From assembly GCF_011386835.1 (NCBI RefSeq), contig NC_088802.1, positions 8,680,001-8,744,000 on the forward strand: a DNA stretch of 64,000 nucleotides, given 5' to 3'. The notes beneath the pieces are model-generated. The model saw only the letters and a list, made by a program, of their open reading frames with translations. It was not told where the DNA came from and searched no databases. The number at the start of each line of letters is the position of its first letter. The first letter of the stretch is position 1. A program made the position numbers and the translations under genes. Shown in pieces: positions 25,501-54,600 of the stretch. The DNA comes from Chrysemys picta bellii. Lineage: Eukaryota.

Positions 25501-28500
25501 GACCACATGTCTCGGTGCTGATTTGTGACCAGCATCTCTCCTCTCCGCAGCGTTCCAGACAGTCCCCACGAACCCGACCCGGAGTCTTACGAACCCCTGC
25601 CGCCCAAACTCATCCCACTCGACGAGGTACGTCTGGCTCAGGGCCCCGGGTTCTCTACCCTGCTTTGGGGGACAGAAGGAAGGGGCCTGTTGGGGTAGAG
25701 CAGGGGGATTGGTAGTCAGGACTCCTGGGTTCACTCCTCACTGTGGAAGGGGTCTAGGGGTTAGAGCAGAGGGTTCATTTCCCAGCTCCCTGGGGACCCC
25801 TCCCCGCTCTGTGTGTCTCTGTCTCCCCTGTATAAACAGGGATGGGCTAGAGAGAGGCAAAGGCCCGGGAACCTGAGTGCCCAGCCGCGACCCCCAGCCC
25901 CTGAGGCTGGGGCGTCCTCCCTGCCCTCAGCCCATCCTGACTCCAGTGTCTCCTCTGTCCCCTCTCTCAGGAATGCACCATGGACGAGGCCGCCTACCAG
26001 GAAGGACTCGACCCGGCCGCCGCCTCGCAGTCTCCCGACGGAGCCGGGGCCTCCAAGCTGCCCCCAGTGCTGGCCAACCTGATGGGGAGCATGGGGGCCG
26101 GCAAGAGCCCTCAGGGCCCCAACCCCAGCTCCTCCATGAACGTGCAGGAGATCCTCACCTCCATCATGGTAATTGGAGCTGCTGCGTAGCCTGACTGACC
26201 CTATAGGCTCCCCGTAGTGGGAGGGTCCAGCACCAAAAGGGTAAACGCTGCACTGCCCTGTGGGTGGGGCCTCCTTGGCCCATCTTCCCCCAGAGCAGAC
26301 CATCACTTCCCCCCCTGCCACCCCACCACTGCTGGAGCGGACCATTGGCCTGCCTCCAGCTTGGTTGAAGGTCCAGCATTTTAGCGGGAAGGGGAAACTC
26401 GGACAGTGCACCAGCTGAGGAATAGTTGGGGTGGGGGGATGCATGGGAGAGTGGGACTCTTTCCCATCACTCCATTCCCCCAAAGCGGTTGGGTCAAGCC
26501 AGCCCCTGGCCCCAGCTAGAGGGGTTAGTGGACTAGCACAGCGCCCTAGAGTTAGAGGTCAGAGAGAGCTGAGGGGGTGTAGTGTGAGTGGGGGAGAGGA
26601 GGGACACTGTCTAACCCTGCTCCGCCTCCCCCCTCTTCCCTACACAGGGCGGGCCCAACAACCACAAGACGGAGGAGCTAATGAAGCAGCCGGATTACTC
26701 GGACAAGATCAAACACTTGCTTGGCAACCTCCAGACACAGCCCCCAGGGCCCTCAGGAGGTAAGAGACCTGTGGGGGGCACTGACCCTGTTCCCACCTCC
26801 CGCTCCTAGGAGAAAATCATGTCCTGCCGGTCGCCTTCTGGGTTCTGTTTCTTTGCCTTGTCTGTCTGTCTTGATGGGGCGCCTGGGACTTAGAACCATC
26901 TGCTCCTTCAGCTCTAGGGGCTCTGGCAGGCAGGTAATCCGAAGGACGTGACCTTGCTCGGTTCGAAAGGCTGGGGCCAGGGGAGAGCTGGTGCACCCAG
27001 CATCTTGATGACATCGTGGGTGTGCGAGTGCATGTCTGTGTGATTTCCTGCTCTGGGGGTTCCAGGAGAGGTGGCCATGTCAACATATTCTGGGTTAGGA
27101 TCGGAGGTTGCTGTGAAGGGATGGGAAGTGGATCCCCCTATTCCTCTCTTTCTCCTCCTCTTCCCCCCCCCCCCCATTGTAACCCCGTTGGCTGTATTTG
27201 ACCCCTCTGCTCTCTTGTCTTCCAGTGCCCCACGGGCTGCTGGGCCCAGGGCCTCTCGCCAATGGATTCCCACCTGGACCAAAGAACATGCAGCATTTCC
27301 CTCCCGGGGGGCCAGGACCTATGCCTGGTAAGCAGGGAGCTACCATCTTCTGGGGGTGGGGCGGGACTGTCAGACTTTCAGCTGGAGTGTGCCAGAGTCA
27401 GTAGGGCCTGCTAACCCCAGTGCAGTGCTAGGAGGTGCTGTGTTGCGGGGAGTGGGGTAGAGGCTCAGTATGGGACACTGCCCTGGCAGTCAGTGCTGGC
27501 GCCAATTCCCCAGTGCGGTGCTAGGGGGCGCTGTGCTGCAGGATGGGGGGGCTCAGTAAGGGGCACTGTGTGTCATGGAGCAGGGTGGGCGTTCGGCAGC
27601 AGGTGTTTTTCTGCCCTGCGTGCTCAGACAAGGGGTCTCTAACCTTTGTGCCTCTCTCTCTCCCCTAGGTCCCCATGGTGGCCCTGGGGGTCCCAACATG
27701 CCCCCAGGTCCCGGCATGCCTGGCGGGCCCAGGATGATGGGTCCTCCCCCTCCCCAGCGAGGCGAGTTCTGGGATCCCCCTGACGGCGGCATGCGGGGAA
27801 ACCCCCACGGGGGTATGCGAGGGGGTGGCCCTGGCCCGGGGCCTGGCCCAGGCCCTTTCCACCGGGGGCGAGGCGGAGAGCCCCCCTTCCGAGGGCGAGG
27901 AGGAGGTGGGCGCAGTGGCGGCCCCCCCAATGGCAGAGGCGGGCCCCCTAACAACGGCATGGGTGGAGGAGGTGGCCACGGCGGTGGCGGCCACGGCGGA
28001 GGTCACGGCGGCCATGGTGGAGGCCACGGCAGGGGCCACGGCGGCCATGGTGGAGGCCACGGAGGCGGCGGCGGCCATGGTGGAGGCCACGGAGGCGGCG
28101 GTCATGGCGGTGGCCACGGAGGAGATCACGGCAGAGGCCACCCAGGGGATCATGGCCGGGGTCATGGTGGAGGCCACGGAGGAGGTAATTGCAGGGGGCT
28201 TGGCATGCCCTCTAGGGGGAGCAGAGGGCCATGGCTTTGGAATGGCCCTGCCCCTATGTGGGAGGGGCCTGTGAGTGCTCCCTCCCCTCCCCCGTTTTTA
28301 TCCAGCAGGTGGCGAGGGCCAATGGGGGAGACCCAGCATGCATTGCACCCATTCGATCCTGCGGGCCCTGCTCCTTGGGGGCGGGGCCCAGAGCGGCAGA
28401 GACCCCCTATGGGCCTGTGAGAACAAGGGAGACGGTTTCAGCTGCAGCATTGCATGCTGGGAGCTGTAGTCTGCTCTTGGTGGCGCAAGTGGAGCATTGC

Positions 28501-28822
28501 ATGCTGGGAGCTATAGTTAGCTCCTGGTGGCCCAGTTACGGTGAAGCATTGCATGCTGGGAGCTTTAATCTATGCTCCTGGCAGTCTGGGTTAGGGTGGA
28601 GTGTTGCATGCTAGGAGCTGTAGTGTCTCCCCCATCCCCTGCCCTGCTCTGCCACCTCTCTGGCCGTGCCCCACCGCTGTGGCTGACCTGCGCCCCGTTT
28701 TCTCTCACGCAGACATGTCGAGCCGCCCCGTGTGTCGCCACTTCATGTTGAAAGGCAGCTGCAGGTACGAGAACAACTGTGCCTTCTACCATCCCGGAGT
28801 GAACGGGCCGCCCCTGCCGTAG
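19525..28822 (+). CDS. PPP1R10: PP1 regulatory subunit 10 (PNUTS), about 870 aa
   Basis: Coding exons 19525-19631, 20882-20968, 21327-21462, 21611-21662, 21768-21845, 22163-22333, 22663-22768, 23240-23349, 23595-23695, 23871-24018, 24371-24526, 24796-25042, 25551-25626, 25971-26168, 26648-26759, 27226-27327, 27669-28184, 28713-28822 (sum 2613 nt). Starts [16 protein letters not shown]. Contains the TFIIS-N-like domain, the RVxF motif KTVTW, a Gly/His region and the C3H zinc finger [32 protein letters not shown]. Confidence 0.98.
19776..19888 (-). mobile_element. Internally deleted Penelope-like terminal fragment
   Basis: Reverse complement of the 48443-48530 sequence, followed by an inverted copy of its own segment. 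Confidence 0.7.
20006..20092. mobile_element. Short palindromic MITE-like repeat
   Basis: Terminal GGCCAGAT...ATCTGGCC and central AGCTCCA...TGGAGCT inverted repeats. Resembles a common turtle palindromic repeat (recalled). Confidence 0.55.
28446..28624 (+). repeat. Four-copy GCATTGCATGCTGGGAGCTGTAGT repeat
   Basis: TGCATG cores at 28451, 28498, 28550 and 28605. Confidence 0.9.
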
Positions 28823-29828
28823 CGCCTGGGGCCCTCCCCCCACCCCGCCGACGCCCCGTGAAACCGCCCAACACAGCCGCCCCCGCTTCATGGACTCTGG
28901 GGTGCCTGCTGTCGGACTTGGGCTGCATCCACCACTTATGGCTTCTGTGAGGCCTTGTAACGCCCAGGGGAGGGAAGGAGCAACCCCCCCTGACGGCTGC
29001 TGCTACTGAGGAACCACTGCGAGGGGAATTCCCCCCGCCACTCCGCTCCCTCCTGTGTTGTTTCAACCTGATGGAGGCGCTGATGGGACCTGACTCCGCG
29101 CCCCCCCCTGACTTTTTGCAAGCACAAGAGCTGCCACCTGCTCTGGGACCTGGGGGCAAGGGGGGCAAAGCAGGTTGTTACCACTGTGTTTATCTCTGTG
29201 GAACCAGCAAAGGTGTAAAGGGAGGGTTGCCAGGCTGCCCCACCCAGCTCCGGGCTGTGATCTGTTTGCGCATTTGCCTGCTGCAGACCTACTCTGAAGA
29301 CATTTTGCCTGGGGAGCCTTGGCCCTGAGGAGCAGCCGGCCACACTGCTCGGCTCCCCCGGAAATACTGCCCTCCTCGGGCATGTGGTCCAGAGACTTCT
29401 CTATCTGGCAGCAGCAGGATACCAATCCTTCGGTTGGGGAGGAAAGAGGTCCCTTAACCACTGCCCCCCACCCACTGAGCAAAGGGGGTGCTTAACTCCA
29501 CCTCCTCAATGGGGTTATCCCACCACGTGCGTGAGAACAAGTGGGATCAGAGCTCCCCTTGCTGTAAATACCCATCCCCACCCCGCCCACTGCGGACACG
29601 CGACTCCCCTTGGTGCTAGTGAGTCGTTGGGGGGGAGGGGGGGCGTGAAGCTGTTTTCTGTGAAAACGGACTGACTTTATTGCTGTTGGCATCTGGGGGC
29701 TTGGTTTGTTTCCTTTCCATTGTTTTATTTTTTTACGGTCTCTCCCTGAGACATGGACTGTCCTCCCCACCCACCCACCCCCACTGGTGCAGCCTCCCCC
29801 TTTTGTTTTGTATATTTTGTACATTAGT

Positions 29829-29834
29829 AATAAA
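29829..29834 (+). terminator. PPP1R10 polyadenylation signal
   Basis: AATAAA about 1 kb after the stop codon, followed by ATTAAA at 29842 and a GU-rich tract. Confidence 0.75.
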
Positions 29835-32303
29835 CATGGTGATTAAAAAATGGATCATCTAATTTAACCTTGGTGTCTGTGCTGGCTGTGTGGGGAAGGG
29901 GCCATCTCTGCGTCTGTACAGCCAACGCCCCGTGAAACACTCTGTACAGCGCCTGGCGCGGCAGGGTCAAGGTCTGTGGCTGGAGCCCGTGAGCACTGCC
30001 GCAGTACAGAGATAGAAGACACAGCAGGGCGGCACCTGTCTGATCGCTTCATTTCGTCACTGAAATAGGAATGAGCCAAATCCCTGTCACATGCTCAGGG
30101 GAGACATTTCCTCGTTCCTACAGTCCTGCTGATGGCTGGGACGCAGCAGGGTCCTGGGAGTTGGACTCAGATTCCACTGGCTAGAATCCCTCAATCCACC
30201 CTGACTTGGTACAGCGCTTGGAACGCTGGGATACCTACCCAGTGTGCAATGCAAGCAAAACTGGTAAAGTTGCCCAACGCTTCCCTTTATAAGCCCGTGT
30301 GTTCAGTTGCTTATAACTTTGCTATGCATCATCTATTTGCGTTGAAACTTCCAACACTGTGTGTCTGCCTTGGGTTGAATATTTGGGAGAAATTTCAATC
30401 GTTTCCAAGAATGAGGCTAAGGAAAAGCACCTTTTTTACACAAGCTAAAAGGTTCTGGTGACCCTGTCTTTGAGAAGTTCTGGTCTCCCCGTGTTTCAGA
30501 GCAGGGACTCAAAACTGGGCAAGGGTGTAACCTGTGTGGCAAGGCTGATGTGCTTTTAGCCATCCCTGGGAAAATTTTGCCTACATTTGGTCACATCATA
30601 ATCCTTTGAAAAATTGTGCTTTGCACAGGCTCAGCGGAGACGCTTTAGATTTTAGCTGCTAAGTTCTCCAACGATCCTGTGTGTGTGCTCCAGCCTCAGG
30701 CTGAGCTACGCTTCCCCTGTGCTTGCAGCTCTGGGAAGGCTGCTGGGCTCAGGCCTGGGAGCGGAGAGCAGGCAGCCGCTCTGTGCCCCTCCGCTGGGCC
30801 CAGGCAGTGTGGAGGAGAATCCTGCCTGGTTGGAGACAGGGGCTGAGAACCAGTCTGAAGGAGGAGGGCAGATTGGTCTAATGGGTGCTTATGCATGGGG
30901 AGGAAGAAAGGGACAGGAATGTGGGTGGAGGGCATGCTGACTGGAGGCCAGGGTGAGGGGAGGAGAGGGACAATAGAAGGGGCAGAAAGTGTCATGCTGA
31001 GGGGTTGCTGGGTGGGTGGGGGTGAGAATATGCAGAGGAGTGTGCCCGCTATGAGACACTCCCCTCCAGGCCGGGAATCATAGAGCCGAGATCCAGAGGC
31101 TCACTATACTATCAGCAACTAGCTCTGAAACCCACCTGCAAAGCATCTCCTGGCCTTCTGGTGCTAGGCTATAGAGAAGATGACAACCTACTACTGGTAT
31201 CAGTTACCCTGGTAGATCAAGTGGCAGAGGGCTGGGTGGGGGACCTAAAAGCTCCATTCTTGCTAGGTGTCAGTATGATGCCACAGGATGGAATTTGTTT
31301 TTTCAGTTTGCTTTTTAAAAAGGGGCCCTGTGCAGTCACTGTAGCAGGAGGTGCTCACCACCCCTCCCCCCAGCATGGGTTGCTCTAAGAAATTGCAGGC
31401 TGTTGGGGGTCAGAGTCTGAGGTTTAATCCTTTCCCTCCTGGGCAGCAGGATTTTGTGTTGTTGCTTCCCCCCAGCAGGCTGGAAGCCAGCATAGAGGGA
31501 CTGGCAATGAGTGATCAGAACAAGCACCAGACCATGCTAGTGGAATAGTGCACCTGATTGGCCCCTGCCAGCCCTTTTATGGCTGCAGAGAAGCTTCCAC
31601 AGGTGCCTTGAGCTACAACAGCTGCTTGTACAATGGCCAACAGATTCATGCTCTGCTGTCCCCCTTTCCAATCACCTCAGTGATCTGTTTCCCCAGCAAC
31701 CATCAGTAGGTTTCAGAGTTTTCACAAGTGGACCAGGCAGGACAGTGGTACAGTGCTGAATGAGCAAATCTCCTATACCGACCATTCAACTTGCCAGCTG
31801 TTAATCCTGAAACCTACTGTTGACAGTGCAACTGGTAAATGGGACTTGATGGGCTGCTGCCGTGGCCTGTAATAAACAGGTCTGAGATGAACAGCTCAGC
31901 CCCCTCACCTTGTTCACAGCAGGGGGTGTTGAGTCTGAAACCGACCAACGATGACTTGGCCATCCTTAACTACCTTGCAGTGAATCATGTTCACCGTCAG
32001 GGCCTGGATGGGGTCAGGGGGAAAACAGACCCCAAAACAAGGTCACCTCCAGCCTTGACTCATCCTTGCCATCTCTAGCACCTAGAGACCCTGCTGCAGT
32101 CACCTTCAGCTCTCCAACAGATGCAGGGTAACAGAAGGATGCAACAAGGGAGGGCTGAATCAGCCTGGCAGAGCTGAACATGGGGACAGCAGCTCTGAGA
32201 GCACCAGGCTAATGTGGTGGCAGGGGGAAGCAGGTGGGGGACAAGGGGGTGTCTACACTTGCCCCAGCCTGGGCTCAGCTCCCATGGACTGCTTCACTTA
32301 AGG

Positions 32304-32639
32304 CCATGGTTCCCAACCAGGGAGACACACCCCTGTGGGTGCACTCAGGTCTTCCATGGGGTACGTCAACTCATCTAGATATTGGCCTAGTTTTACAACA
32401 GGCTCCATAAAAAAGCACTAGGCAAGTGAGTACAAACTAAACTTTCAGACAATGACTTTGCACTGCACTGTAAGAACAATATTTATATTCCAGTTTAATT
32501 TATAATTATATGGTAAAAATATGAGAGCAATTTTTCAGTACTAGTGGCTGTGACACTTGCATCGGATTTTGTGAGCAAGCCATTTTTAAGTGAGATGAAA
32601 CTGAGGGGTACAGTAGCCTGGAACAGTGGAGAGCCCCTG
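32304..32639. mobile_element. Degenerate hAT MITE
   Basis: Ends CCATGGTTCCCAACC...GTGGAGAGCCCCTG. Flanks ACTTAAGG / ATTTAGGG match 6 of 8. Confidence 0.5.
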
Positions 32640-33645
32640 ATTTAGGGAGCAGGATACAGGGGCCTTTCTACACTGGCAGGCTGGGCTCTGCTCCAGCCAC
32701 TTGAGAATCAGGCCTCTGATTTTACCTAATTGAGGCCCCTGTAGGCAGCAAGTTCATTAGACTACACCATAGCAACCCTGTGGACTGGAAAAGGTCTGAA
32801 AGGGGAGAGCCCACCCCCTGGCTTAGCCCAAACCAACAGGCCTGGAATTCTAAGCTCAGGCCTGGTTAAGAACAACACTGTCAAGCCAGAGCTCCATGAC
32901 CATATACCAGTATGTCAGAAACTAGGCCCAAGGGGGGTATGAAATGAGGTGGGTGGGCTAGCCTATGCCACCCCCCCCCCCGCCCATTCCTTTTGGGGAT
33001 TCTTAAAGAGACTCGAGGGAGAAAAATTGGCTACTGTCTGGCAGCCTCCCCCCCCGGCTTCTGGGACCCTAGGCCCACCTTCACCTGAGCAGAGCAGGTC
33101 TAAGAGGACCCAAAGGACCCCTCCGCTTGCTACAGCAAAATCCCAACCCCCCACATGGGACATGACTTAGTCCCCCAACCGCTGTGTCTTTTTCCTTCCT
33201 CATCAACACTGCTGTGAGCCTGCAGCCAGAGAGGTGGCCTGAACCGCCCATTGCTGGCACAAGTTTGCCAGGTGGTGGAGCTGCTGATCAACCCCCCACT
33301 GGGCCCATGCTGCTGTGGTACCGGAGGTTGCAAGTGCCAAACCCTGCACCCCGTTCTACATGGTTCAGCCTTTCCCTCTCTGTGGCAGTAACACAGATGG
33401 ACCCATCCCAGTCAACCTTTTGCCCCATGTTTGTCACGAGTTGTGGGGGCTCAGCCCAGCCTCCAGCAGGGCAGGCGCCCCCTTCCCACCAGCCACGTGG
33501 GCAGAAATGGCCCCAGCTCCCCTCTGCCCCCTTGAAGGAGTGAGTGGGCCAGACAGACACCCTCTGCTCCCAACCTCGCCGGCCATAATGAATCCCCACC
33601 CCCCGCACAATCAAAGCCACCACCAGCCACTTTTTTCCTTCCTGT

Positions 33646-33651
33646 TTTAAT
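33646..33651 (-). terminator. ABCF1 polyadenylation signal
   Basis: ATTAAA on the minus strand about 345 nt after the ABCF1 stop codon. Confidence 0.55.
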
Positions 33652-33994
33652 TGAATCCTGTCACACAGAAGCAGAAGGCGGCTCAAACCATCTTCGGAGC
33701 AGCTGGGGGGTGAGAAGAGTCCAGCAATGGGGCACAGTCCCCTCCCCACCTGGCCCAAAATAGACCAACCATCCTCCCCCCCCCCCTTCATATAAATAAC
33801 CGGTGGCCCTTCCCAGAAAGGAAGCGGGTGGCAAAAAAAAGAGCACCCCACCTTCACAGGTTTAGCCCCACCCCATCATTATAGCCACGCCTCCTCCGCT
33901 ATCCAGCTGCTCAAAAGTCCTGCTGCAAAGGGGCAGGCTGGTGAATGTAGAGTCCATCATGGGGGGGAGGAGCTTTGGGAGGCTCCGCCCCACC

Positions 33995-36900
33995 TCACTC
34001 GCGGGGCCGGTTGATGATGACCTCGCCCAGAGCCTCCAGCACCTCGCGCTTGTAGTCATCGAAGTCGCCGTCAATCTGCTCGACGCTCTGGTCCTCCACC
34101 ACCCACAGCTGGCAATTGGTCTCCGTGATCAGCCGGGCGTCGTGGCTCACAATGATGACGGCTGCAAGGGGAAGGGGGGGGTTAGGGGAGCAGGGGGATC
34201 CCCCATTCCAAGAGGTGGGAGATACCATCCCACAGACAGGGGAGATGGGGCATATGTTTGAGGGTATCGCCCAGGAAAATGCATGCTGGGTAGTTTGTGC
34301 AGGCCCTTTTGTGGGGTGGTGTCACTCGGTGAGGGCCATTATAGGAAGTGGTTTTTATCCCTAAATAACCAACCTCCTCCCCTCGGAACAGACCAATAGG
34401 GCCCATCCAACCTCGTATTCCCTCCCTTCCCCACGGAGCAGACCAATGGACCCATCCTGCCCGGAATTCCCAACCCAGTCCCAGCCACGGACCAGACCAA
34501 CAGATTCTTCTGGCCCAGAATTCCCTCTTCCCCACCCTTGGACCAGACCAATGGGCCGTTCCAGCCTGGAATTCCCTCCCCACTAGGCCAATGGGCCCAT
34601 CCAGCCCAAGCGCCCGCTGGCATCACTCACCCCCTTTGTACTCATTGATGGCATCAGCCAGGGCATCGATGGACTCGATATCCAGGTTATTGGTAGGTTC
34701 GTCCTGGGGAAGAGACAATGGGCTGAGATGGCGAAGGAGCAGATCCCAGAGAGAACCCAGGAGTCCGGACTCCCAGCACCTCCCTGTTCTAACCCAGTGG
34801 ACCCCACTCCCCTCCCAGAGTCGGGGATAGAACCCAGGAGTCCTGGCTCCCAGCCCCCGATTCTAACCTATGGGGCCTGGTGCTCTCCAGGGCCCTGTCC
34901 CACCCCTTGCCCCAGAGACACTCACCAGAATGAGGACGTCGGGCTCCCTGCAGGCCAGCTCGGCAAACACCACACGAGCCTTCTGGCCTCCTGGGGGGAA
35001 GGGAAAGAGTGGGGCAGGGTGAGGGATGAGACAGGGGAGCCCTCTCCCCACTTGTCTGCATCATCCCTCACCTTGGACAGCCAAGCCCTTCCCACCTCCA
35101 ACCTAAGCTGCTGGGTGCCCTCCCCCATCCCGTGCCCCCCACCTCTCCTGATTGCCCAGAACCTGGCCCTCTCCCCTCCCCCAACATAAGCCCCGGCCTC
35201 AACCCCCACCTCCCCTGGGTGCCCCCTCACTTCTCCAGACCCTGCTGCTTACTCTGTATACTCAACCCCAAGCCTTCCCTAGACCCCCCCCCCAAGGTCC
35301 CCCCAGCCCTGCCCCCTCCCCGAGGCCCCGCCCCCAGTACCGGAGAGCTTGCAGATCTGGATGGTGTGGGCGTGGCTCTCGAGGCCAAAGCGCCCCAGGC
35401 ACTTGCGGGCGTCCTGGTAGGGCAGGTTGAAGTTGCGCTGCAGGTACTCGGTCGCCGTCTCCTGCATGTTCAGCTGGTCGGCGTATTGCTGGTTAAAGAA
35501 GCCGATTTTCTACGGGGAGAGAGAAAGGGGCAGAGTCACCACCCAAAGCACCGCCCCCTTGCTGCTGGTTCCCACTCCCTGTCGCACCCCGGCTCTGCTG
35601 GTACTCCTCAATTGCATCCTGCAGCCCCCTGCTATCCCAGCCCTGGGCTCCCCCCACCCAGCTCTGCCAGTGCCCCCAATGCGCAGCCCCCTGCTATCCC
35701 AGCCCTGGGCTCCAATCCCAACCTGCAGCTCCCTGCTATCCCAGCCCTGGGCACCCCCCAACTCTGCCAGTGCCCCCAATCCTATTGTGCAGCCCCCCTG
35801 CTATCCCAGCCCTGGGCACCCCCCAGCTCTGCCAGTGCCCCCAATCCTATTGTGCAGCCCCCCTGCTATCCCAGCCCTGGGCTGTCCCCCAGCTCTGCTA
35901 GTGCCCCCCAATCCTATTGTGCAGCCCCCCTGCTATCCCAGCCCTGGGCTGTCCCCCAGCTCTGCTAGTGCCCCCCAATCCTGACTCGCAGTCCTCTGCA
36001 ATCCCAGTCATGGGCTTCCCTACCCACACAAACCTCAGCATTTGGGTCCCGTCATTACTTACTAGTCTGTGGTTTTTCCTCATCTCCCCTCTTGTCTGAA
36101 AGGAGAAGAGAAAGGGGTTAATGGATACTACTTTCCTCTGCCCTCTAGTGTGTTAACAGCAGACAGCGAGCCCTCGCCCAGCACTGAAATGCAGCCACCT
36201 CTGGGGTGGGGCAGCTGGGGAAAAGCTGCACAGCAGTTTAGGACAGGAGGGAAGGGGAATCCTGTCCCCAATTGAAGACACACAGAGGCAGAACAGAATT
36301 GGACGAGTTTGGCTTGAGTCTGGATTCGGGGGGTTTCGGGAAGGGCCCCTTACCGGTGTGAGCTTCCCCGTCAGCAACAGCAGCAGTGTGCTCTTCCCTA
36401 CGCCGTTCGGCCCCACGATGCAGACTGAGAGGCGGAGAGAGAGCAGCCATCAGTGACTCAACCAGACCAGGAGGGCGGTGGGCTAGCACGGGGGCTCTGC
36501 TGGGACTGATTCATTAGCATTGGACTCCCCACTACCTACCCCACGACTGCGAGTGGGAGCTTGTTATTGTAGGGTCTCTCGAGGGAGCTATGAGGGCCGC
36601 TTCGTTAACGTCAGATCTCTCGGGATGCTACAGGGTCTGCACGGGCTGGTTTGTTATTTTAAGGTCTCTCAGAGGTGCTGGGGGGTTGTGCAGACTGACT
36701 ATTACTGTAGGGTCTTTCCTGGGGCTGAACAGTCCAATTCATTGTCGTAGGGGTGTTGGGGCTGTGTGCAGGTTTGTTATTGTGGGGTCTCTCAGGAGCA
36801 CTGTGGCTGCACCAACTAGTTCATCATCATCGAGTTGCTGGGTGAGGTTATTATAGGGTCTTGCCCACAGGTGCAGCCTGTACACCCTGGTTTGTAGCGT

Positions 36901-45900: not shown

Positions 45901-48900
45901 GCGCACTCTGAGTCTACACAGCAACCCCTAGGGCTCCTTCCAGCCCACCCCCAGTTACAGCCCATTCCCTTGTGTAGGGCCCCTTGCAGCCCAAGTCTAG
46001 AGAGCTCTCCTGAGCCCTATGGCTCCTTTCAGCCTAGAGTCTCACCTTCTTCTTCTTGCCACCTTTGGTGATGGGAACAGTCGCTGGAAAGGAAACGAGA
46101 GAAGGACTTTAGGGATCGATGGAACGGAGACACAACCACTCCCTCCATGGGGAGCTAGACCCATAGAAATCTTGGTCCTCCAGCACCTTGGGAGATCTGG
46201 GATGGGAGGGCTTCCTGGTGGGTTGTCATCTTTTAGCTCCCTGCTGACGCATGTGGGGCTGGGCTCTCCTGGCGTAGGGGCTGGAGCCAAGGGGCTAGTG
46301 CAATGGGGCAGGGGCTAGGAAAAGGCAGGCCATGGAGAAGAGAGGCCCGTGCTTCTCATCCCATGGGGCAGGTCTCAGGAGGGATTGGAGAGGGCCCCCC
46401 TCTGGGCTCAGTGGCAGAATGGCGCTGCTTTTTATACCCCAGAGATGGCACCACAGCCGCTGTCTACCTGCCCCCCTGCACCAGGCATTACCCACCACGT
46501 TAACCCCTCACACACCAAAAACAATCACCATATTCCAGGGCGTGGAAGTGTGGCAAGTTGAGCTCCTGCCAGCTGTCCAGATTAATTACTTGGGGGGTAT
46601 GGAACCCAGGAGTCCTGACCTCCAGGTCCCACCCCCACCCTAACAGTTAGCGCTCACTCCCTTACCAGACCTGGGAATGGAACCCAGGAGTCCTGGCCCC
46701 CAGCCTCATCCTGTCTCACCTTCCTCATCCTCATCGCTGCCCGGAGCCGACAGCTTCTTCAGCTTCTCGATCAGCTGGTGCTCTTCCTCATCCTCCTCTG
46801 CCTCCTTCTTCTTCTTGTCTTTCTTCTTTTCTCGTTTCTTTTTCTGTTGTTGAAGCTGGGGTGGGGGAGACAGAGATGAGACGTGGGGGGGGGGGTCATA
46901 TCTCCCTTGCACGCAGCCCCATGAGAATCTTGGGGCGGGGGAGCCCTGGTTAAGCAAGGCATCCCTTTCTAGCAGCATAGTTATTGTAGGTCCTACAATA
47001 ACATCCAGCAGCCCCCCGGGGGAGTTCCTTTAGCTCAGTGGTTCTCAAACTTTTGTACCGGTGACCCCTTTCACATAGCAAGTCTCTGAGTGCGACCCCC
47101 CTTATAAATTAAAAACACGTGTTTAAATATTTAACACCATTATAAATCCTGGATGCAAAGCGGGGTTTGGGGTGGAGGCGGACAGCTCGCGACCTCCCCA
47201 TATAATAACCTAGCGACTCCCCACGTAATAACCTCGTGATCCCCTGAGGGGTCCCGACCCCCAGTTTGAGAACCCCTGCTTTAGCTGCTCACCTGTTGCT
47301 GCTGCTGCTCCTTCTCTTTAATGACAGCCTGCTGCTCGCTGACTTGTTTTTCTTCCACGGCCAACTCTTCAAAGAACTGGGGAGGGCAGCAGGGATAGAT
47401 TAGAGCTCTGCTTCCTACCCCCTCCCACCCCCCAGGAGTCTCCCTGCTCCTAGTGGTGAGGGAAGGGCACTCTAGCTGGTGACCATTCCCGTTTCACTCC
47501 CCCCACCCCCGGCAATGGGAGATTGCACTGTGCTATGGGAGATCCAGCCACCTTCCTTTGCCTGTCCCCTAGCAGTGAGATCTGAGAGACACAGCTACTC
47601 GTCCCCATTTTTAGTATTGACAAACCCCAGCTGAGATCATGGCCAGATGCTGCCCAGACACACAGCGAGAGACAGTCCCTGCCTCAGCTAAGATCAGGGC
47701 CCCGTTGTGCCAAGCGCTGCCCAGACACACAGTGAAAGACAGTCCATGTAACTAGCTATATGGTGGGAGGAGATATTAAGGCACAAAGAGAAGTGATTTA
47801 ACTCAAGTCACACAGCAGGGCGGGTGTAGAACCGAGGTCTCCTGAGTTAAAGCCCAATCCCCTGTCCACTAGGCTCCTGTACCAGAGCTCACACCTCCCC
47901 CAGCATGGCCTGGCTCAGTTCCACTTCTTACCGACTTCTTGGTCTTTTTGTCCTTCTTGCCCTTCTTCACCACTTTGTCTGAAACAAGTCAGGAGAGATT
48001 AATCCAGGCAGGCGGGAGAGAACCCAGGAATCCTAGTTCCCAGCCCCTCCGCTCTCATCCATTAGACCCCACTCCCGACGGTGAGCTGGGAATAGAACCC
48101 AGGAGTCCTGGCTCCCAGACCTCTCTATCCACAGCCACTCCCTCCACTGCACAGGCCCGTCTGGGTCCCACCTGGGGCAGTTCTCGTGGGTGGATGTGTG
48201 GGCACCTCTTGTCCTCCACCCCCACCTTAGTCCAGATCAGCCTTGGCTGAGCCTAGTTCATCCCATTGCTCCCTCCTTCTGAACCTGGTTCACTTCAAAA
48301 GTTTTTTTCCCTCTTATTTAATTGGCCTCTCAGAGTTGGTAAGACAACTCCCACCTTTCCATGCTCTCTGTATGTGTGTGTGTGTGTATATATATGTTCC
48401 GAAGTTTCTTCTATGCATCCGAAGAAGTGGGCTGTAGCCCACGAAAGCTTATGCTCAAATAAATTTGTTAGTCTCCAAGGTGCCACAAGTACTCCTGTTC
48501 TTTTTGCGGATACAGACAAACATGGCTGCTACTCTGAAACCAATGATTCACCCCAGTGTCTCACCTGGTTCAGACCCAACCCCCCTCCCCCCAAATAATC
48601 CAGCTTCGGTTCCAGCTCAGCTTCTCCCCATCTAGCCCTGCCCCAGGACTCCTCCTCCCGCCAGTCTCTTCCCCATTAACCTCCTTTCCACTCCCCCCCC
48701 CTTCCCTCCAGGGTCTCTTCCCCCACATCTCATCCCCCACTTTAGCCAGCTTAGGGTCCAGCCCCCTCTCCCCCTGCTTTGGCCCAATTCAGTCCCTCAG
48801 TTTTTATGCCACTCCAGCCCAGCCCTCCTTGGCCAGGTTCTAACCCCCCCCCCAGTCCCATCCAGTACTGTCCCGTCCCCCCCAGACCACTCCTACCCAG

Positions 48901-49376
48901 TACTTCCGCCCCCGGCACTCCCCCCACCCCCCAACCCAGTCCCCCCCGGTTCTCGGTCATCCCCCCACCCCCCCGATTCTCTGTGCCCCTCCCCCAGCCC
49001 GGTCCAACCACCTCCCGCCCCAATCCCACCCGGCCCTGTGTACCCCCCATGGACCAGTCCCCCCCCGGTTCTCTGCCCCCCCCTGGTTCTCTGCCCCCGG
49101 TTCTCAGTCTCCCTCCGCCTCCGGTCCAACCACCCCCTGCCCCAATCTCCCCCGTTCTCTGCCCCCACCCCAGGTTGTCTGTTCCTCCCTTCTCCCCCCG
49201 GCCCGGTCTGGTCCGGTCCAACCATCCCGCGCCCCAATCCCACCCGGCCCTGTGTATCCCCCCACGGCCCGGCCCAGGCCGGCCTGCTCACCTGCGGCCT
49301 CCCCAACCTTCTGCTCCCCATCCCCGATCCACTCTTCCTGCGGCGGCCGCGGCGGCTGCTTCCCCCCCTTCGGCAT
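33995..49376 (-). CDS. ABCF1: ATP-binding cassette subfamily F member 1 (ABC50), about 913 aa
   Basis: 28 exons: 49376-49292, 47978-47932, 47376-47293, 46855-46720, 46083-46046, 45709-45596, 45088-45014, 44563-44498, 44231-44148, 43637-43566, 43288-43190, 42773-42678, 42254-42132, 41381-41281, 41134-41049, 40840-40701, 40449-40301, 39973-39890, 39150-39026, 38260-38148, 37705-37534, 37064-36990, 36424-36354, 36095-36063, 35509-35341, 34990-34926, 34703-34631, 34161-33995 (sum 2742 nt). Two ABC domains: GPNGKGKT / FSGGWRMR / LDEPTNHLD and GPNGVGKST / LSGGQKAR / LDEPTNNLD. Exons 8-10 rest only on splice sites, phase and composition. Confidence 0.96.
34385..34612. repeat. Roughly 50-nt tandem repeat (ACCAATGGGCCCATCCAGCCCGGAATTCCC), CR1-3'UTR-like
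   Basis: Five degenerate copies. Related copies at 43700-43890 and single copies near 1245, 37735 and 61875. Confidence 0.7.
35615..35985. repeat. Roughly 65-nt GC-rich minisatellite, 6 copies
   Basis: GCTATCCCAGCCCTGGG anchors at 35631, 35693, 35735, 35800, 35865 and 35932. Confidence 0.92.
36550..36970. repeat. Degenerate TTGTTATTGTAGGGTCTCTC repeat, about 7 copies
   Basis: Recurrent motif in ABCF1 intron 22 at spacings of about 40-100 nt. Confidence 0.7.
37238..37478 (-). mobile_element. AmnSINE1-like fragment (Deu domain and 3' part)
   Basis: CTGAAATGCAGCCACCTCTGGGGTGG...CAACAGTTTGGGGCAGGAAGTGAAG...TTTGGCCAGGACA...CAGCGCCCCCTAGCGTCATGCTGGGGCATTG follows the reverse of the recalled AmnSINE1 consensus. 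The GCAGCCACCTCTGGGG core recurs near 3320, 3410, 12710, 22455, 36190, 43360 and 63160. Confidence 0.65.
47036..47278. mobile_element. Young hAT (Charlie-like) MITE
   Basis: TIRs CAGTGGTTCTCAAAC / GTTTGAGAACCCCTG and a perfect 8-bp TSD CTTTAGCT at 47028-47035 and 47279-47286. Confidence 0.9.
48310..48540 (+). mobile_element. Penelope-like element terminal fragment with a hammerhead-like motif
   Basis: AATTGGCCTCTCAGAGTTGG...GCATCCGAAGAAGTGGGCTGTAGCCCACGAAAGCTTATGCTCAAATAAATTTGTTAGTCTC...GGCTGCTACTCTGAAAC matches the abundant turtle Penelope-type repeat (recalled). Confidence 0.7.
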
Positions 49377-49560
49377 GGCCGGTCACCGCGCCCAGCGCTC
49401 ACATGCAGTCCCGGCCAGCAGCTGGGAAACCTCACCACTGCGCCTGCGCGGGGCGGCCCAGCCTGACCATCGAGTGCCGGAAGCGCCCAGCCCAGAGTGG
49501 CTTCCGCGGCACCATAGAGAGCCGCGGAGCAGTAGAGACGCACTGTTGTGTGGCTAGATA
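49377..49560 (-). promoter_or_regulatory. ABCF1 proximal CpG promoter
   Basis: CpG-rich, with an NRF1-like GCGCAGGCGCA (minus strand, near 49439-49449), an ETS CCGGAAG near 49478 and a GC box. Confidence 0.6.
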
Positions 49561-50929
49561 AGCCCCTTAACACCAATGATGTGGTTCAGTCCTCTATGGA
49601 AGTGGGGGCTGCTGATTGGGGGCAGGGAGTCCCCCAAGCCAGGCCCAGCCTAGGGGTCCCTCCCTGTCCTGCCAAACACAAGGGGATGCTCATAGGGCAG
49701 GTGGCACCCCAAGGCCCCATCGCACAACTGTCGCACCAAAGCCAACGCCACCATGTTACCCCCATCTGTTCCCCGCACTGGGAGCTGGGAGCCAGGACTC
49801 CTGGGTTCTGTCCCCAGCTCTGGGAGGTGGGGTGGGGGGCTGGGAGCCAGGCTCCTGTCCTTGCAGTGCTGTCTGCAGGTGCTAGGCCGGGCCAGGTGAT
49901 TTAGGGGGAGGAACCACGAAAGCGCAGCCGGGGAGAAAGCACTAGGGGGCAACAGGGACAGGAGTGAGGGTTAAAGGTTGAACATCAGGGATCTGGAGGA
50001 GGGATGCCAGGCAGAGAACCGCCGACAATGCCCGCCGCTCCTTAAAGGCGTCTAAAGAGACAGTGGATGCTGCCCAGAGGAACTCCATCCCAGGGAGGCC
50101 ACATGCCCAGGCAGGTCTCTTTTTAAAAAGTTCGTCCCTCATCCAGTATGGGGACTGCGGTGTCAGCTGGGGGAATGTGATTCCACCCCCTCTGGCTCTT
50201 AAAGAGCACGCCACCCTCCCCACATGTGGCGTGACCTCACAGGCACTGTCATTCCAGCAGGAATGGGACAGCATGCTCCTAAAAATGGTCCATTCTGTCA
50301 CCCAGTGTGGCATGACCTCGCATGTGCCATCATGCTGGCGGGGCTGGGATGATCCTGGGAATAGAATCCATGAATCCTGGTCAAACATATGAAGTATCCT
50401 ACCCTCTCTTCACAAAACTAACTGGTTGAAACATGAGACAAGGTAACATATAGTATTGGACCAACTTCTGTTGGTGAAAAATGGTCTGATTTGGACATTA
50501 AATGTTCCCAGAGCCCCAAAGAAACTGATGTGCTATCCAGCTGCCTCAGAATCAGGGTAGACAAATCTACTTTGGTTATAGTTATCTATCAATTAACAAG
50601 AGAAAAACGTATACATAATGTAAAGTTTGACATGTCCAGTGGGTTCGGAGGGGGTGGCGAGGGGCTGGGAATCAGGACTCCTGGGTTTTGTCCCAGTTCT
50701 GGGAGGTCAGTGAGGTTTAGTGTGTTAGAGCACAGAGACTAGGAGTCAGGTGCCAGGACTCCTGGGTTCCATCTCTAATCCACTCTCCCTCCTGTTCTCT
50801 TATCTTGAGTAGTTCAGCCCAGTTGCTCCCATACACCTAGACTGAAAGATTTATCATTGTCTCCGTGTTTCCTCCTCCTGAGCCTAAATGGGAAGGGATG
50901 GGATAGTTGAAATCCCTCCCCCTTTCAAA

Positions 50930-51570
50930 ATGGTTCAACCTAGTCCTAGCACACCCACCCCCAGCAACAGAATGGTTCATCCACATCTCTGCCCTGTAAA
51001 TAATTCCGCCCACTGCACCCACCTTTAACAAAAATAGTAGAGACCAGTGTTTCCCCTCTAATGGTACAACCCAGTCTCACTGCCCCCAGATCTGAATGGT
51101 TTAGCCCAGACTCCTGCCACACTGATATCCCCCCAGCTAAATGGTTTATCCCAGACTAGTCTGTTCTTAATAGTTCCTCTCCCTTCTCATTCTGCCTCCC
51201 CATATCTTTAAATGGTTTATTCTGCCTCCCTGCTCTATTGGGATCTATATGGTTTCTTCTCCCCCCACCATTCAGTGGTTTCTCCCAGTTGCCGAGTGGG
51301 TTATTCCTTCCCTCAGCGGTTGCTCCCAAATTTCACACCCACCCACCCACCCACACACACGGCTCTCGGTGGTTTATTCTGTCCCACGCTCCAAGTGGTT
51401 TATTCCCCCCTTCCTCAGTGGTTTCTCCAAGTTTCCTCTCCCCCCCGTCTCAGTGGTTTATTCCTCCTTCCGCCATGGTTTCTCCCAGATTTCTCCCGCC
51501 CGGGTTCTCAGTGGTTTCTTCCAGTCACAGTGGTTTGCTCCGCCCCCCTCCCCCTCGGGCCTGCAGAGTG
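50930..51570. repeat. Degenerate array of (A/G)TGGTTT cores followed by pyrimidine tracts, upstream of GNL1
   Basis: About 18 copies by eye, such as CAGTGGTTTCTCC and AAGTGGTTTATTCC, every 25-60 nt. Confidence 0.7.
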
Positions 51571-51620
51571 GTTCTTCCCGCTTCCCTCCCGGTGCTGCGG
51601 GACGGCGGCCGGGCCGGGAC

Positions 51621-54600
51621 ATGCCCCGCAAGAGGCCGTTTAGCGCCAAGCAGAAGAAGAAGCAGCTGCAGGACAAGAGGGAGCGGAAACGGGGTGAGGA
51701 GGGGGCCACGGCCACCAACATCGGGGCACCGACCCCTCCCCCCGCCAACATCTGGGCACCGACCCCTCCTCCCCCCCTCCCCCAACATCTGGGCACCGAC
51801 CTCCCTGCCCCCACCCATATCTGGGCACTGACCTTCACAAGCATCTGGGCACCAACCCCCTCCCTTACTGCCACTAACACCTGGGCACCGCCCCCCTCCC
51901 CCACCACCAGCAACATCTGGGCATTGACCTTCCCTCTCCCCCCACTAACATCTGGGCACTAAACCCCTTCCCAATATTTGGAGACTGACCCATTGCCCCC
52001 CCCCCCGTTCCCAACAGCTGGGGAGTGAACATTTTCCTTACAAAAAATACATCTCCCGACCCCAATATTGAGGGAACCCCCCCCCCCTCATCCCAAAACA
52101 TCTGGGCACTGACCTTTCCTTCTCCCCACCCCAACATCTGGGGGCTGACTCAATCCTGGCACTTGAAATTGCCTAGGGCCCCTGGAGCATGGTGGGGGTG
52201 GGGGATTTAATGTGGGGGAGTTAGGCAGACGAGAGGCCGTGGAGTATCCCAGCGCCCTGTAGAAATTTAGACAACCTCCCTGGGCACAAAGGCCCTCTTT
52301 CCGAGCAAAACAATTGGGTGCTCTCCCCCAGTGCTGCGCTGTGGCAATCAGGCACCAATCTAGCAAGCCCCCAGTTTAGCTTAACATCTGGGGGTAGCCA
52401 GTCCTGGAGTTGCAAGCCCTGCCCTGGGCATGTCCCATTTCCCCCCTCCCCCGCATAAGTCTGACTCTGGGCTAAGTCCCCTGGAGAGAGAGCGCATGCA
52501 GCCTGGTGCCTGTTCTTAAAGCATTGAAGACAGTAAACAAGGGAAATTGCTAGGCAAAAACTCAGCGAGAGCTATAAAATAGAGAACAGGCTATGTTAAA
52601 GTGGTATCAACTGGGGCTGGATCAGAGCTGGCACCCCTAGAGGGGAAAGGCCCTATATCCCCAAACTGAGATGCAACATTGGACTTTGAGCACCTAGACA
52701 ATAAACCAAGGCAATTCCCAGGCAAAACCGAGCTGTGTTAAAGCCCTGTTACCCAGAATTCAGCTGGCAGCCGGTCAAGAGCACAATGTGCAGGACTCTC
52801 TCATCTGTGCCTTGCCAAGGAGCTTGCCTCTGGCATGCGGCGCCAGCCCTGGCACCCTCCGAGGTCTTCACAGGGGGGCCATGGATCAGTGTGGCCAGGG
52901 CATCTGTTCAGAAGGGCAGCTGTGGTTGCCTAAGGTATTTCCAGCCGCTGTTGCCATTTGAGTGTTGGGTGCAGTGCTATGGGGCACTGTGCTGCAGGGA
53001 GCGGGATGGGAGCTCAGTAGGGGCGCTCTCCCGTTGCAGTCAGTGTGACCCCAATATGGCACATGGGAGTGCTGTGCTGCAGGGAGTGGTACAGGGGGCC
53101 CCCACACTGTGCCATGCCATGTGCTTGCCTCTGACCCAGGGCTGGGTGGACGGTGGTGCCCTGTGCTAGGGAGTCCTGACTGTTGAGGCTGAGGTAGGCT
53201 GCAAGCCAGCGTTCCTCGGCCCTGCCTCACAAACCGTCTGGGAGCGGCTGATAAGGAGCCCCACCCTGGCCACACTAATCTCCTCCCCCAACTTTCGTTC
53301 GGCCCCTGGGTGACCCTCTGCTCTGCTGCTGACATCCACTCAAGGCGCCTCAAAAATTCCTGCCTGCGGCGATCCTTCGCTCAACTCCAGCGCCTGCCCA
53401 GAGTCACACTGGTAGAGCCGAGGATAGAACCCAGGAGTCCGGGCTCCCAGCCCCCACCCTGCTCTAACCCACTAGACGCTCCTCCCATTTCATGAGGAAT
53501 GATGCCATCCCCTCTGCAGTCTCTGAGGGGGATGGAGTCTTGCGTGGGAGGGAGACTGGATCCAGCCCCCAACTCTGTTGCCGCAGACACGCGATACGCT
53601 GCAAGCGTCCCCGGCTCTGAGCAGCCCTGACGCAGCGTCATGGGCCCTGCAGGGCTGCATTGCAGAGCCTGGGTCTGACCTTGGGGCCTTGATCTGTGGA
53701 GGTGCATTATGCTGCCTTGGGCCGGCGCGCAGCCAGCGCCTCCTAGTGGGGACAGGTCCCTGACTCTGCCCTCTCTGTGCCCCAGGTCTGCCTGATGGCG
53801 TGAGGTCGAGCTCCAACAGCCGGAGTGGCAGCCATGAGCGGCGGGAGGACCACACAGACACGTCGGACAGCGAGTCCCTGTCCCTGCAGGTCCGGAAACT
53901 CAACCAGCAGCCAGCAGTCCGCAGGCTGGGGGACCGCAGCTATGACCCCAACAGGTAATGAGGGGCGGTGATCGGGGGGAAACTGAGGCATGGAGCCGGT
54001 CACACAGAGCATATGTGGCAGAATCAGGTGTAGAATCCAAGGGTCCTGATTCCCAGCTCCTTTGCTCTAACCACTAGATTCTGCTCCCTTAGACCCCATT
54101 CCCCTCCCAGAGCTGGGAATAGAACCCAGGAGTCCTGGCTCCCCCACGCCCCCTTGCTCTGTCACCCCTGTTGATAGCTGCAGTGGGATGAATTTAGGCC
54201 AACCTGCCGCTCCGGGGTTGGCTCTGAGGTCTGTCCCCTCCTGGGCAGGTCTAGCCTTGCTGCTGGACGGGGGGTTATAGTGGAGGGGGAGAGCGGTTTA
54301 CCTCGGTGGATCCGGCTGTACCGAAGGGCCCTATGGCCTGTGAGGCCCTATGCAACGAGTCCAGCCATGGCAGATCAGCTGGGGAGAGGTGGCTGCGTCG
54401 GGGGTCTCCCTGCTGGGTCGGGGAGAGCTCCCCCCAACACACACAGCGCCCCTGTTCATGGGCCTCAGCCCTGCCCCTGCAGGGATCTGCCCCTAGGGGA
54501 CAGGGAGGAGCTGGGACTCTGTGGCCGGTTCAGCCCTCAGTTTCCCGGATGAGGCTGCCAGCATGGGGGCTGGTCAGTGCTGGGTGTAGCGTGGGGACAG

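Follow-up and report, generated by a model that had tools for sequence, protein, structure and literature searches.

Genes assembled from pieces of older genes by partial duplication or exon shuffling are known from several lineages, e.g. Drosophila jingwei and primate TRIM5-CypA. Here we consider PRR3, a conserved framework gene of the mammalian major histocompatibility complex class I region, from the standpoint of a 64,000-nucleotide stretch of the turtle Chrysemys picta bellii (assembly GCF_011386835.1, contig NC_088802.1, positions 8,680,001 to 8,744,000 of the forward strand; hereafter the window), which carries PPP1R10 (PNUTS), ABCF1 and GNL1. The order reported for a bat is GNL1 (-), PRR3 (+), ABCF1 (+) and PPP1R10 (-) (PMC4753418), so that any part of PRR3 derived from PPP1R10 must be inverted with respect to its parent. 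In the duck the published order is MRPS18B-PPP1R10-ABCF1-GNL1, with PRR3 absent (PMC10845735); GNL1 and ABCF1 are given together among the framework genes of caecilians (PMC12619710), and PRR3 was listed as 'not found' in zebrafish (PMC1309616). Full-text literature searches returned no statement on the origin of PRR3. One literature match to the name was set aside, being nectin-3, which bears the alias 'PRR3'. Database naming hints that the similarity between the zinc fingers of PRR3 and PPP1R10 was implicitly known; the contribution of ABCF1 and the exon-by-exon correspondence with PPP1R10 appear to be new.

Our analysis makes it likely that PRR3 is a late chimera of the mammalian lineage, built from the neighboring genes ABCF1 and PPP1R10, and that the turtle window displays the ancestral tetrapod arrangement, as had been proposed in an earlier note drawn from the letters of this stretch. 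On sequence grounds, each part of PRR3 is traceable to a distinct, older parent: exon 1 to ABCF1, and exons 2-4 together with the polyadenylation (poly(A)) site to PPP1R10. PRR3 retains the intron positions and phases of its parents, and the junction between the two parts is phase-compatible. The gene arose no later than the ancestor shared by marsupials and eutherians.

In the window, ABCF1 and GNL1 are arranged head to head, with start codons at 49376 (minus strand) and 51621 (plus strand), a distance of 2,245 bp, and the window contains no N, i.e. no assembly gap. Searches with wombat, deer and devil PRR3 (tblastn) gave no meaningful match in 49377-51620, the matches within the window being to PPP1R10 exons and ABCF1 exon 1. 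Contigs from RNA-like public runs revealed no additional spliced exon over the interval, only the splice between ABCF1 exons 1 and 2 and GNL1 exon 1; the joint of ABCF1 intron 1 (47978/49292) was present in contigs from three such runs. The claim that the 2.2 kb between the two start codons hold no other exon was thus upheld, and no PRR3-like gene in the orientation of ABCF1 lies between GNL1 and ABCF1, the position of PRR3, in the turtle window. A six-frame scan of the window for C-x(6-9)-C-x(4-6)-C-x3-H found one genuine CCCH finger (28733-28792), located in the last PPP1R10 exon, in agreement with the earlier note, which had assigned the only CRHF-type finger to this gene.

The distribution of PRR3 was assessed with two word-indexed searches of 5.8 billion clustered proteins, using the finger region and full-length wombat PRR3 as queries. 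Full-length PRR3 was recovered from eutherians and three marsupials (wombat, opossum and Tasmanian devil) only; monotreme PRR3 was not among the database proteins, which represents absence from annotation only. With wombat PRR3 as query, an exhaustive HMMER search covering 1.84 billion representatives recovered PRR3 and PPP1R10 along with numerous unrelated CCCH proteins bearing multiple fingers, with no non-mammalian match to the PRR3-specific middle region, for which all named matches were from mammals. ABCF1 was not returned by this search, as expected given that the ABCF1-like exon encodes 24 residues. A six-frame search of the whole turtle genome (2.37 Gb) with wombat PRR3 turned up two places only, the finger exon of PPP1R10 and a recent duplicate of this exon. 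The mammalian order GNL1<>PRR3>ABCF1, which the earlier note had given, was seen in the loci of fallow deer (L014) and Tasmanian devil (L015), both of which read GNL1 (-), PRR3 (+), ABCF1 (+). The PRR3 residues quoted there (the MPKRKKQ start, LLGPPPMANG, and the end beginning RPVCRHF) are likewise present in eutherian PRR3 database proteins.

The resemblance of the PRR3 start to ABCF1 exon 1, originally drawn from a human and turtle pair, was far better in marsupials. ABCF1 exon 1 of deer and devil has 73 coding bases and ends in phase 1, and devil PRR3 exon 1 has exactly 73 coding bases and the same phase. The two devil exons align without gaps, with 12/24 residues (50%) and 47/73 bases (64%) identical; none of 200,000 residue or codon shuffles attained the observed identity (p below 5e-6), and both exons finish in an Ala codon followed by G|GT. 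When devil PRR3 was compared with the turtle window using tblastn, ABCF1 exon 1 was the second-best match, beginning at the same Met. Eutherian PRR3 exon 1 (106 nt) consists of the marsupial-type exon plus a Gln-rich insert of 11 codons, which accounts for the weaker appearance of the human and turtle comparison (the global score for eutherian PRR3 versus turtle ABCF1 exon 1 was 33).

Similarity extends to a short element upstream of the coding sequence. The 12-mer CCGGAAGCGGAA was found in exactly two copies per mammalian locus (deer and devil), 54-95 nt upstream of the PRR3 and ABCF1 starts; as an ETS-type site, it supports a shared origin of the two promoters, short of proof. The turtle ABCF1 5' untranslated region (UTR) and promoter contain ETS-type GGAA sites in both orientations, including CCGGAAGCG at 49477 on the plus strand. 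In deer and devil, the PRR3 exon 1 copy lies 1.16-1.21 kb from the GNL1 start, and the ABCF1 promoter copy lies 6.7-11.6 kb downstream of the PRR3 start.

The remainder of PRR3 follows the 3' end of PPP1R10 exon by exon. Deer PRR3 comprises four exons (L014 10001-10106, 10818-10880, 13183-13473 and 13762-13865) with 106, 63, 291 and 104 nt of coding sequence, separated by three introns that are all in phase 1, and the devil splice sites are equivalent. The phase 1 assigned beforehand to ABCF1 intron 1 and to the last PPP1R10 introns was confirmed, all three introns joining the last four turtle PPP1R10 exons being of this phase. When anchored on conserved residues, each of PRR3 introns 1-3 falls, in deer as in devil, at the position of its counterpart among the last three PPP1R10 introns. 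The acceptor of PRR3 intron 1 leaves a split codon and three residues ahead of LLGP, identically in PPP1R10; the codon interrupted by intron 2 encodes Gly in both genes (Ala in deer PRR3), ahead of FH.G in PRR3 and of PHGG in PPP1R10; and intron 3 splits an Asp codon before (K/M)S.RPVCRHF in both genes. The PNUTS counterpart of the LLGPPPMANG region, which the earlier note had pointed out, is a 10-residue stretch in the third-from-last PPP1R10 exon (Table 1). In opossum (Monodelphis domestica), one PRR3 isoform (P0063) is without exactly exon 2 (63 nt, phase 1 to 1), a skip made possible by the symmetric phases of this exon.

Similarity was strongest for the finger exon, with 80% identity over 35 residues between PRR3 and turtle PPP1R10 (tblastn within the window, E about 1e-15); none of 3000 composition-preserving shuffles attained the observed score of PRR3 exon 4. 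Shuffles of the same kind gave p = 0.008 (wombat) and below 3e-4 (deer) for exon 2, p = 0.008-0.025 for exon 3, and p = 0.001-0.003 for exons 2 and 3 combined, where collinear landmarks include GPPNG and a stretch ending in (F/P)R. Correspondence continues beyond the stop codon. The turtle poly(A) module of 80 nt contains a T-rich stretch, AGTAATAAAC and a downstream GT-rich CAT.T..TTTAA.C..GGTGT element, and its best match was the PRR3 3' end both in the 24-kb deer locus (E 5e-5) and in the 22.6-kb devil locus (E 4e-4). The module lies at a similar distance from the stop codon in all three genes: 1.0 kb for turtle PPP1R10, 1.15 kb for PRR3 of deer and 1.05 kb for PRR3 of devil. Because PRR3 introns occupy the parental positions and the whole PPP1R10 3' end was kept, the copy was genomic; an origin of PRR3 as a retrogene, i.e. 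an intronless copy of a processed mRNA, was ruled out by the three introns.

Two exact matches of 18 bases were observed between the turtle PPP1R10 3' UTR and the deer locus. The sequence TGTTTTCTGTGAAAACGG (window 29652-29669; L014 14870-14887) is collinear with the poly(A) module, lying 149 nt upstream of it in turtle and 117 nt upstream in deer. It possibly represents a conserved element of the 3' UTR common to PPP1R10 and eutherian PRR3, and does not appear in the devil alignment. The other, GACTGTCCTCCCCACCCA, links 29756-29773 of the turtle 3' UTR with L014 13869-13886, directly after the deer PRR3 stop codon. This match was set aside as evidence, as it is non-collinear with the other 3' UTR matches and unexplained.

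These observations can be arranged into a sequence of events. The ancestral locus would have had PPP1R10 (+) tail to tail with ABCF1 (-), and ABCF1 head to head with GNL1 (+) across a bidirectional promoter region of 2.2 kb. A DNA-level partial duplication of the two neighboring genes would then have produced PRR3, in which the 5' module (an ETS-type core promoter element and the 73-nt phase-1 exon) would derive from a copy of the ABCF1 promoter and exon 1, and the 3' module (exons 2-4, the end of the 3' UTR and the poly(A) site) from an inverted copy of the last three PPP1R10 exons. With all junctions in phase 1, ABCF1 exon 1 splices in frame onto PPP1R10 exons. The rearrangement could have been a single replication-based template switch or, in two steps, an insertion and a tandem duplication, the number and order of steps being conjectural. 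The copy adjoining GNL1, now PRR3 exon 1, presumably occupies the original position of the ABCF1 promoter, with ABCF1 left on the other copy. The earlier proposal of a fusion of ABCF1 promoter and exon 1 to inverted PPP1R10 3' exons is therefore supported by the homology of the modules; that a single local rearrangement brought them together is our inference.

Several observations weigh against this account. The turtle ABCF1 exon 1 differs in length from the 73 nt of therians (Table 1), and CCGGAAGCGGAA, being a transcription-factor site, could be convergent. Between the PRR3 and ABCF1 5' regions, short-word blastn detected likeness at the 12-mer and around the start codon only; within the mammalian loci, blastn with the PRR3 gene as query detected none in the PRR3-ABCF1 spacer or at the ABCF1 5' end. 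No remnant of GNL1 exon 1 was found upstream of mammalian ABCF1, and none of inverted ABCF1 3' exons downstream of PRR3 (tblastx and blastn); since the duplication borders have left no surviving remnants, the path of the rearrangement is unproven. PRR3 exons 2 and 3 are of low complexity, so that their sequence similarity by itself reaches no more than moderate significance. Among non-mammals, the comparison at the DNA level covered this turtle only; otherwise the absence of PRR3 beyond therians rests on protein annotations and published gene lists.

The same coverage, a single non-mammalian genome with no monotreme, leaves room for an older PRR3, already present in the ancestor of amniotes or of tetrapods and later lost from turtles along with other sauropsids, in which case the turtle arrangement would be secondary; the chimeric structure itself dates nothing. 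We regard such a history as improbable, as no full-length PRR3 from outside therians was found among 5.8 billion clustered proteins, ABCF1 adjoins GNL1 in the duck, the two are paired in the caecilian list, and PRR3 was not found in zebrafish. Moreover, tblastn revealed no decayed PRR3 exon in the turtle interval, and in length PRR3 exon 1 agrees with exon 1 of therian ABCF1 (73 nt) and not with the 85-nt exon of the turtle. It could also be argued that only the PPP1R10 part was duplicated, and that exon 1 of PRR3 arose independently at the GNL1 bidirectional promoter, its likeness to ABCF1 being due to chance or convergence. Such an origin would suit a short exon of 24 codons, the weak match between eutherian PRR3 and turtle ABCF1, and the lack of surviving similarity in the introns and wider promoter. 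It fits poorly with the ungapped devil pair of equal length and phase, whose identity no shuffle reached, with the adjacency and common orientation of PRR3 and ABCF1, with a promoter 12-mer shared at matching positions in two species, and with the devil PRR3 match to turtle ABCF1 exon 1 from the same Met; we give it as small a chance as the loss of an older gene.

The remaining alternative is that turtle PRR3 was relocated. A six-frame search of the whole genome with the finger exon as query detected a second PPP1R10-type finger exon (G000:C12:12872432-12872557; 95% identical) 4.1 Mb away, and a 161-residue NCBI model of Chelonoidis abingdonii that maps to the same C12 locus (P0012) is called 'proline-rich protein 3'. 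Relocation nevertheless seems very unlikely to us. The locus is part of a duplicate in which window 22531-29518 matches C12:12878527-12871723 with 85-91% DNA identity, introns included, and window 29518-35677 matches C12:12849130-12841497 with 74-90%, the intergenic DNA being copied as well; such identity is far too high for genes that parted more than 300 million years ago. The two blocks are separated by an insertion of about 22.6 kb, inside the former PPP1R10 3' UTR. At least 11 PPP1R10-type exons are present, of which PRR3 has only the last three types, as well as the ABCF1 3' end, and the locus has neither an ABCF1-like first exon nor the four-exon structure of PRR3. Its finger is 78% identical to that of PRR3, as distant as the true PPP1R10 finger. 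In the 'PPP1R10-like isoform X3' of Malaclemys (P0143; XP_053902950), the PPP1R10-derived exons match the C12 locus mostly at 92-100%, and the first 194 residues match upstream exons (C12:12880237-12885906) that include a KRAB box (Pfam E = 7e-24); several 'PPP1R10-like' models of Mauremys also belong to this locus. All turtle copies have Lys in place of Met in the finger (CRHFKLKGSC), which marks a single duplication within turtles, before emydids, geoemydids and tortoises separated. The C12:12.87 Mb locus is best read as a young, turtle-specific segmental duplicate of PPP1R10 and not as PRR3, and the earlier question of a PRR3 orthologue elsewhere in turtles, apparently raised by Chelonoidis, was answered in the same way: P0012 was rejected as a decayed PPP1R10 duplicate reading through a stop codon.

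A late chimeric origin of PRR3 from ABCF1 and PPP1R10 is thus the reading we retain, and the turtle duplicate adds to it a parallel case. The C12 locus (12841497-12885906) may be a KRAB-PNUTS chimeric gene, as modeled, with both the CCCH finger and a TVSW (RVxF-type) stretch retained. The duplicate indicates that the PPP1R10 tail is readily duplicated in part and captured by 5' exons of other genes. A broader proposition, to which we assign about even chances, is that therian-specific PRR3 sits on the original ABCF1 side of the GNL1/ABCF1 bidirectional promoter, with ABCF1 on the duplicated copy, and that the PPP1R10 3' module (Pro/Gly tract, CCCH finger, poly(A) site and phase-1 exons) has served as a repeated donor, joined to ABCF1 exon 1 in mammals and to KRAB exons in turtles.

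The coordinates of the features discussed are given in Table 1.

Table 1. Features of the Chrysemys picta bellii window that bear on the origin of PRR3 (positions counted from the first nucleotide of the window).
Feature	Position	Strand	Remarks
Duplicated segment: PPP1R10 (3' half), intergenic DNA and ABCF1 (3' end)	22531..35677	.	~13 kb; diverged copy at G000:C12:12841497-12878527 (blastn, 80-91% identical)
PPP1R10 fourth-from-last exon	26648-26759	+	exon/phase mapping
PPP1R10 third-from-last exon	27226..27327	+	102 nt, phase 1 at either end; homologous to PRR3 exon 2
PPP1R10 second-from-last exon	27669..28184	+	516 nt, phase 1 at either end; rich in Pro/Gly, with RGG-like and Gly/His repeats; homologous to PRR3 exon 3, which is without the Gly/His repeat
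PPP1R10 last exon	28713..28822	+	CCCH zinc finger and stop codon; homologue of PRR3 exon 4
PPP1R10 polyadenylation module	29801..29880	+	~1.0 kb past stop; conserved at PRR3 3' end
ABCF1 exon 2	47933..47978 (approx.)	-	sets intron 1 phase; contig joint at 47978, loose ends at 47932
ABCF1 exon 1, coding part	49292..49376	-	85 nt, 28 codons + 1 base, phase 1, then GTGAGC donor; homologue of the parent of PRR3 exon 1
ABCF1 5' UTR and core promoter	49377..49520	-	contig of run X1 spans 49292-49520
ABCF1/GNL1 intergenic interval	49377..51620	.	2,244 bp; repeat fragments and degenerate tandem motif array, without PRR3 exon
GNL1 exon 1, coding part	51621..51693	+	73 nt, then GTGAGG donor; contigs continue into the following exon

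Turtle GNL1 exon 1 is 92% identical to its deer and devil counterparts. Its coding part has the same length and phase (73 nt, phase 1) as exon 1 of therian ABCF1 and PRR3; given that no other sequence likeness to those exons was found, this is probably a coincidence. Just upstream of GNL1 (50880-51580, plus strand) lies a degenerate tandem array of an RTGGTTYWYYC-like motif. Of nine exact matches to the motif in the window, where 1.2 would be expected window-wide, seven fall within this array, each of them on the plus strand. Tandem Repeats Finder (TRF) reported a period of 57 bp at 51394-51522, and a GNL1 transcript contig covers part of the array. In a GNL1 transcript contig of a related turtle (run X6), position 50105 is joined straight to 51484 with non-canonical ends; since this contig omits 50106-51483, about 1.4 kb of the interval would be dispensable or lineage-specific, which suggests a genomic insertion or deletion of 1.4 kb between turtle species in the ABCF1/GNL1 spacer. 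An interspersed repeat of very high copy number, with the core GGGAGCCAGGACTCCTGGGTTC, has left fragments at 48416-48544, 49706-49834 and 50609-50737, and in the RNA-like runs these showed very high contig depth and numerous repeat-to-repeat joints.

At about 185 residues, the PRR3 protein is far shorter than PPP1R10 (about 750-940). Pfam found only zf-CCCH above cut-off in PRR3, with no TFIIS-like domain, and a Med26/TFIIS domain in full-length PPP1R10; a fish-type full-length PPP1R10 (P0145) already has both the TFIIS-like domain and the C-terminal finger. As only the last three PPP1R10 exons were copied, PRR3 should be without the PP1-binding region, which lies upstream of those exons (the PP1-binding motif has no Pfam model, and no separate motif search was made in PRR3). 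The finger histidine of both human PRR3 and PPP1R10 is methylated by CARNMT1 (PMC12275196). The most economical hypothesis is that PRR3 would serve as the nucleic-acid-binding tail of PNUTS in a form that either stands alone or competes with PNUTS itself. If it is indeed a PNUTS tail without the TFIIS-like and PP1-binding regions, expressed from a housekeeping promoter, it may compete with the PNUTS C-terminus.

If the origin set out above is right, PRR3 would provide a clean case of gene birth, in which two adjacent genes gave the parts and matching intron phases gave in-frame splicing. Its birth would also serve as a dated marker, a therian and possibly mammalian change in an otherwise very stable gene block. 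For annotation, tortoise and bird proteins named 'PRR3' are in error, being fragments or duplicates of PPP1R10, and a naive tBLASTn search of turtles would be misled by the duplicate. The blue tit (Cyanistes caeruleus) protein P0011 was rejected as PRR3, consisting of an intron-like translation and the sauropsid PPP1R10 last exon.

Compared with its parents and with similar systems, PRR3 shares with the PPP1R10 C-terminus the order of exons 2-4, intron position and phase, LLGP.P.ANG, the Pro/Gly-rich tract, the CCCH finger and the poly(A) module; it differs in its opposite orientation and in having neither the TFIIS-like N-terminal domain nor the long Gly/His repeat. With ABCF1 it has in common the 73-nt phase-1 exon, the pattern MPK..KQ..(P)..PE..GD.E..S.A, the upstream CCGGAAGCGGAA, orientation and adjacency, whereas past exon 1 nothing is shared, and in eutherians the exon carries the Gln-rich insert. 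The turtle KRAB fusion resembles PRR3 as an independent partial duplicate of the PPP1R10 3' end, joined to foreign 5' exons in gene predictions. It differs in being young, restricted to turtles, 4.1 Mb from its parent and composed of roughly half of PPP1R10, with a KRAB box as the 5' partner of the predicted gene. Like chimeric genes of the jingwei and TRIM5-CypA type, PRR3 appears to be built from parts of two older genes, with phase-compatible introns and a captured promoter; unlike them, its parents are immediate neighbors, the introns were kept (no retroposition), and the 3' donor was copied in inverted orientation.

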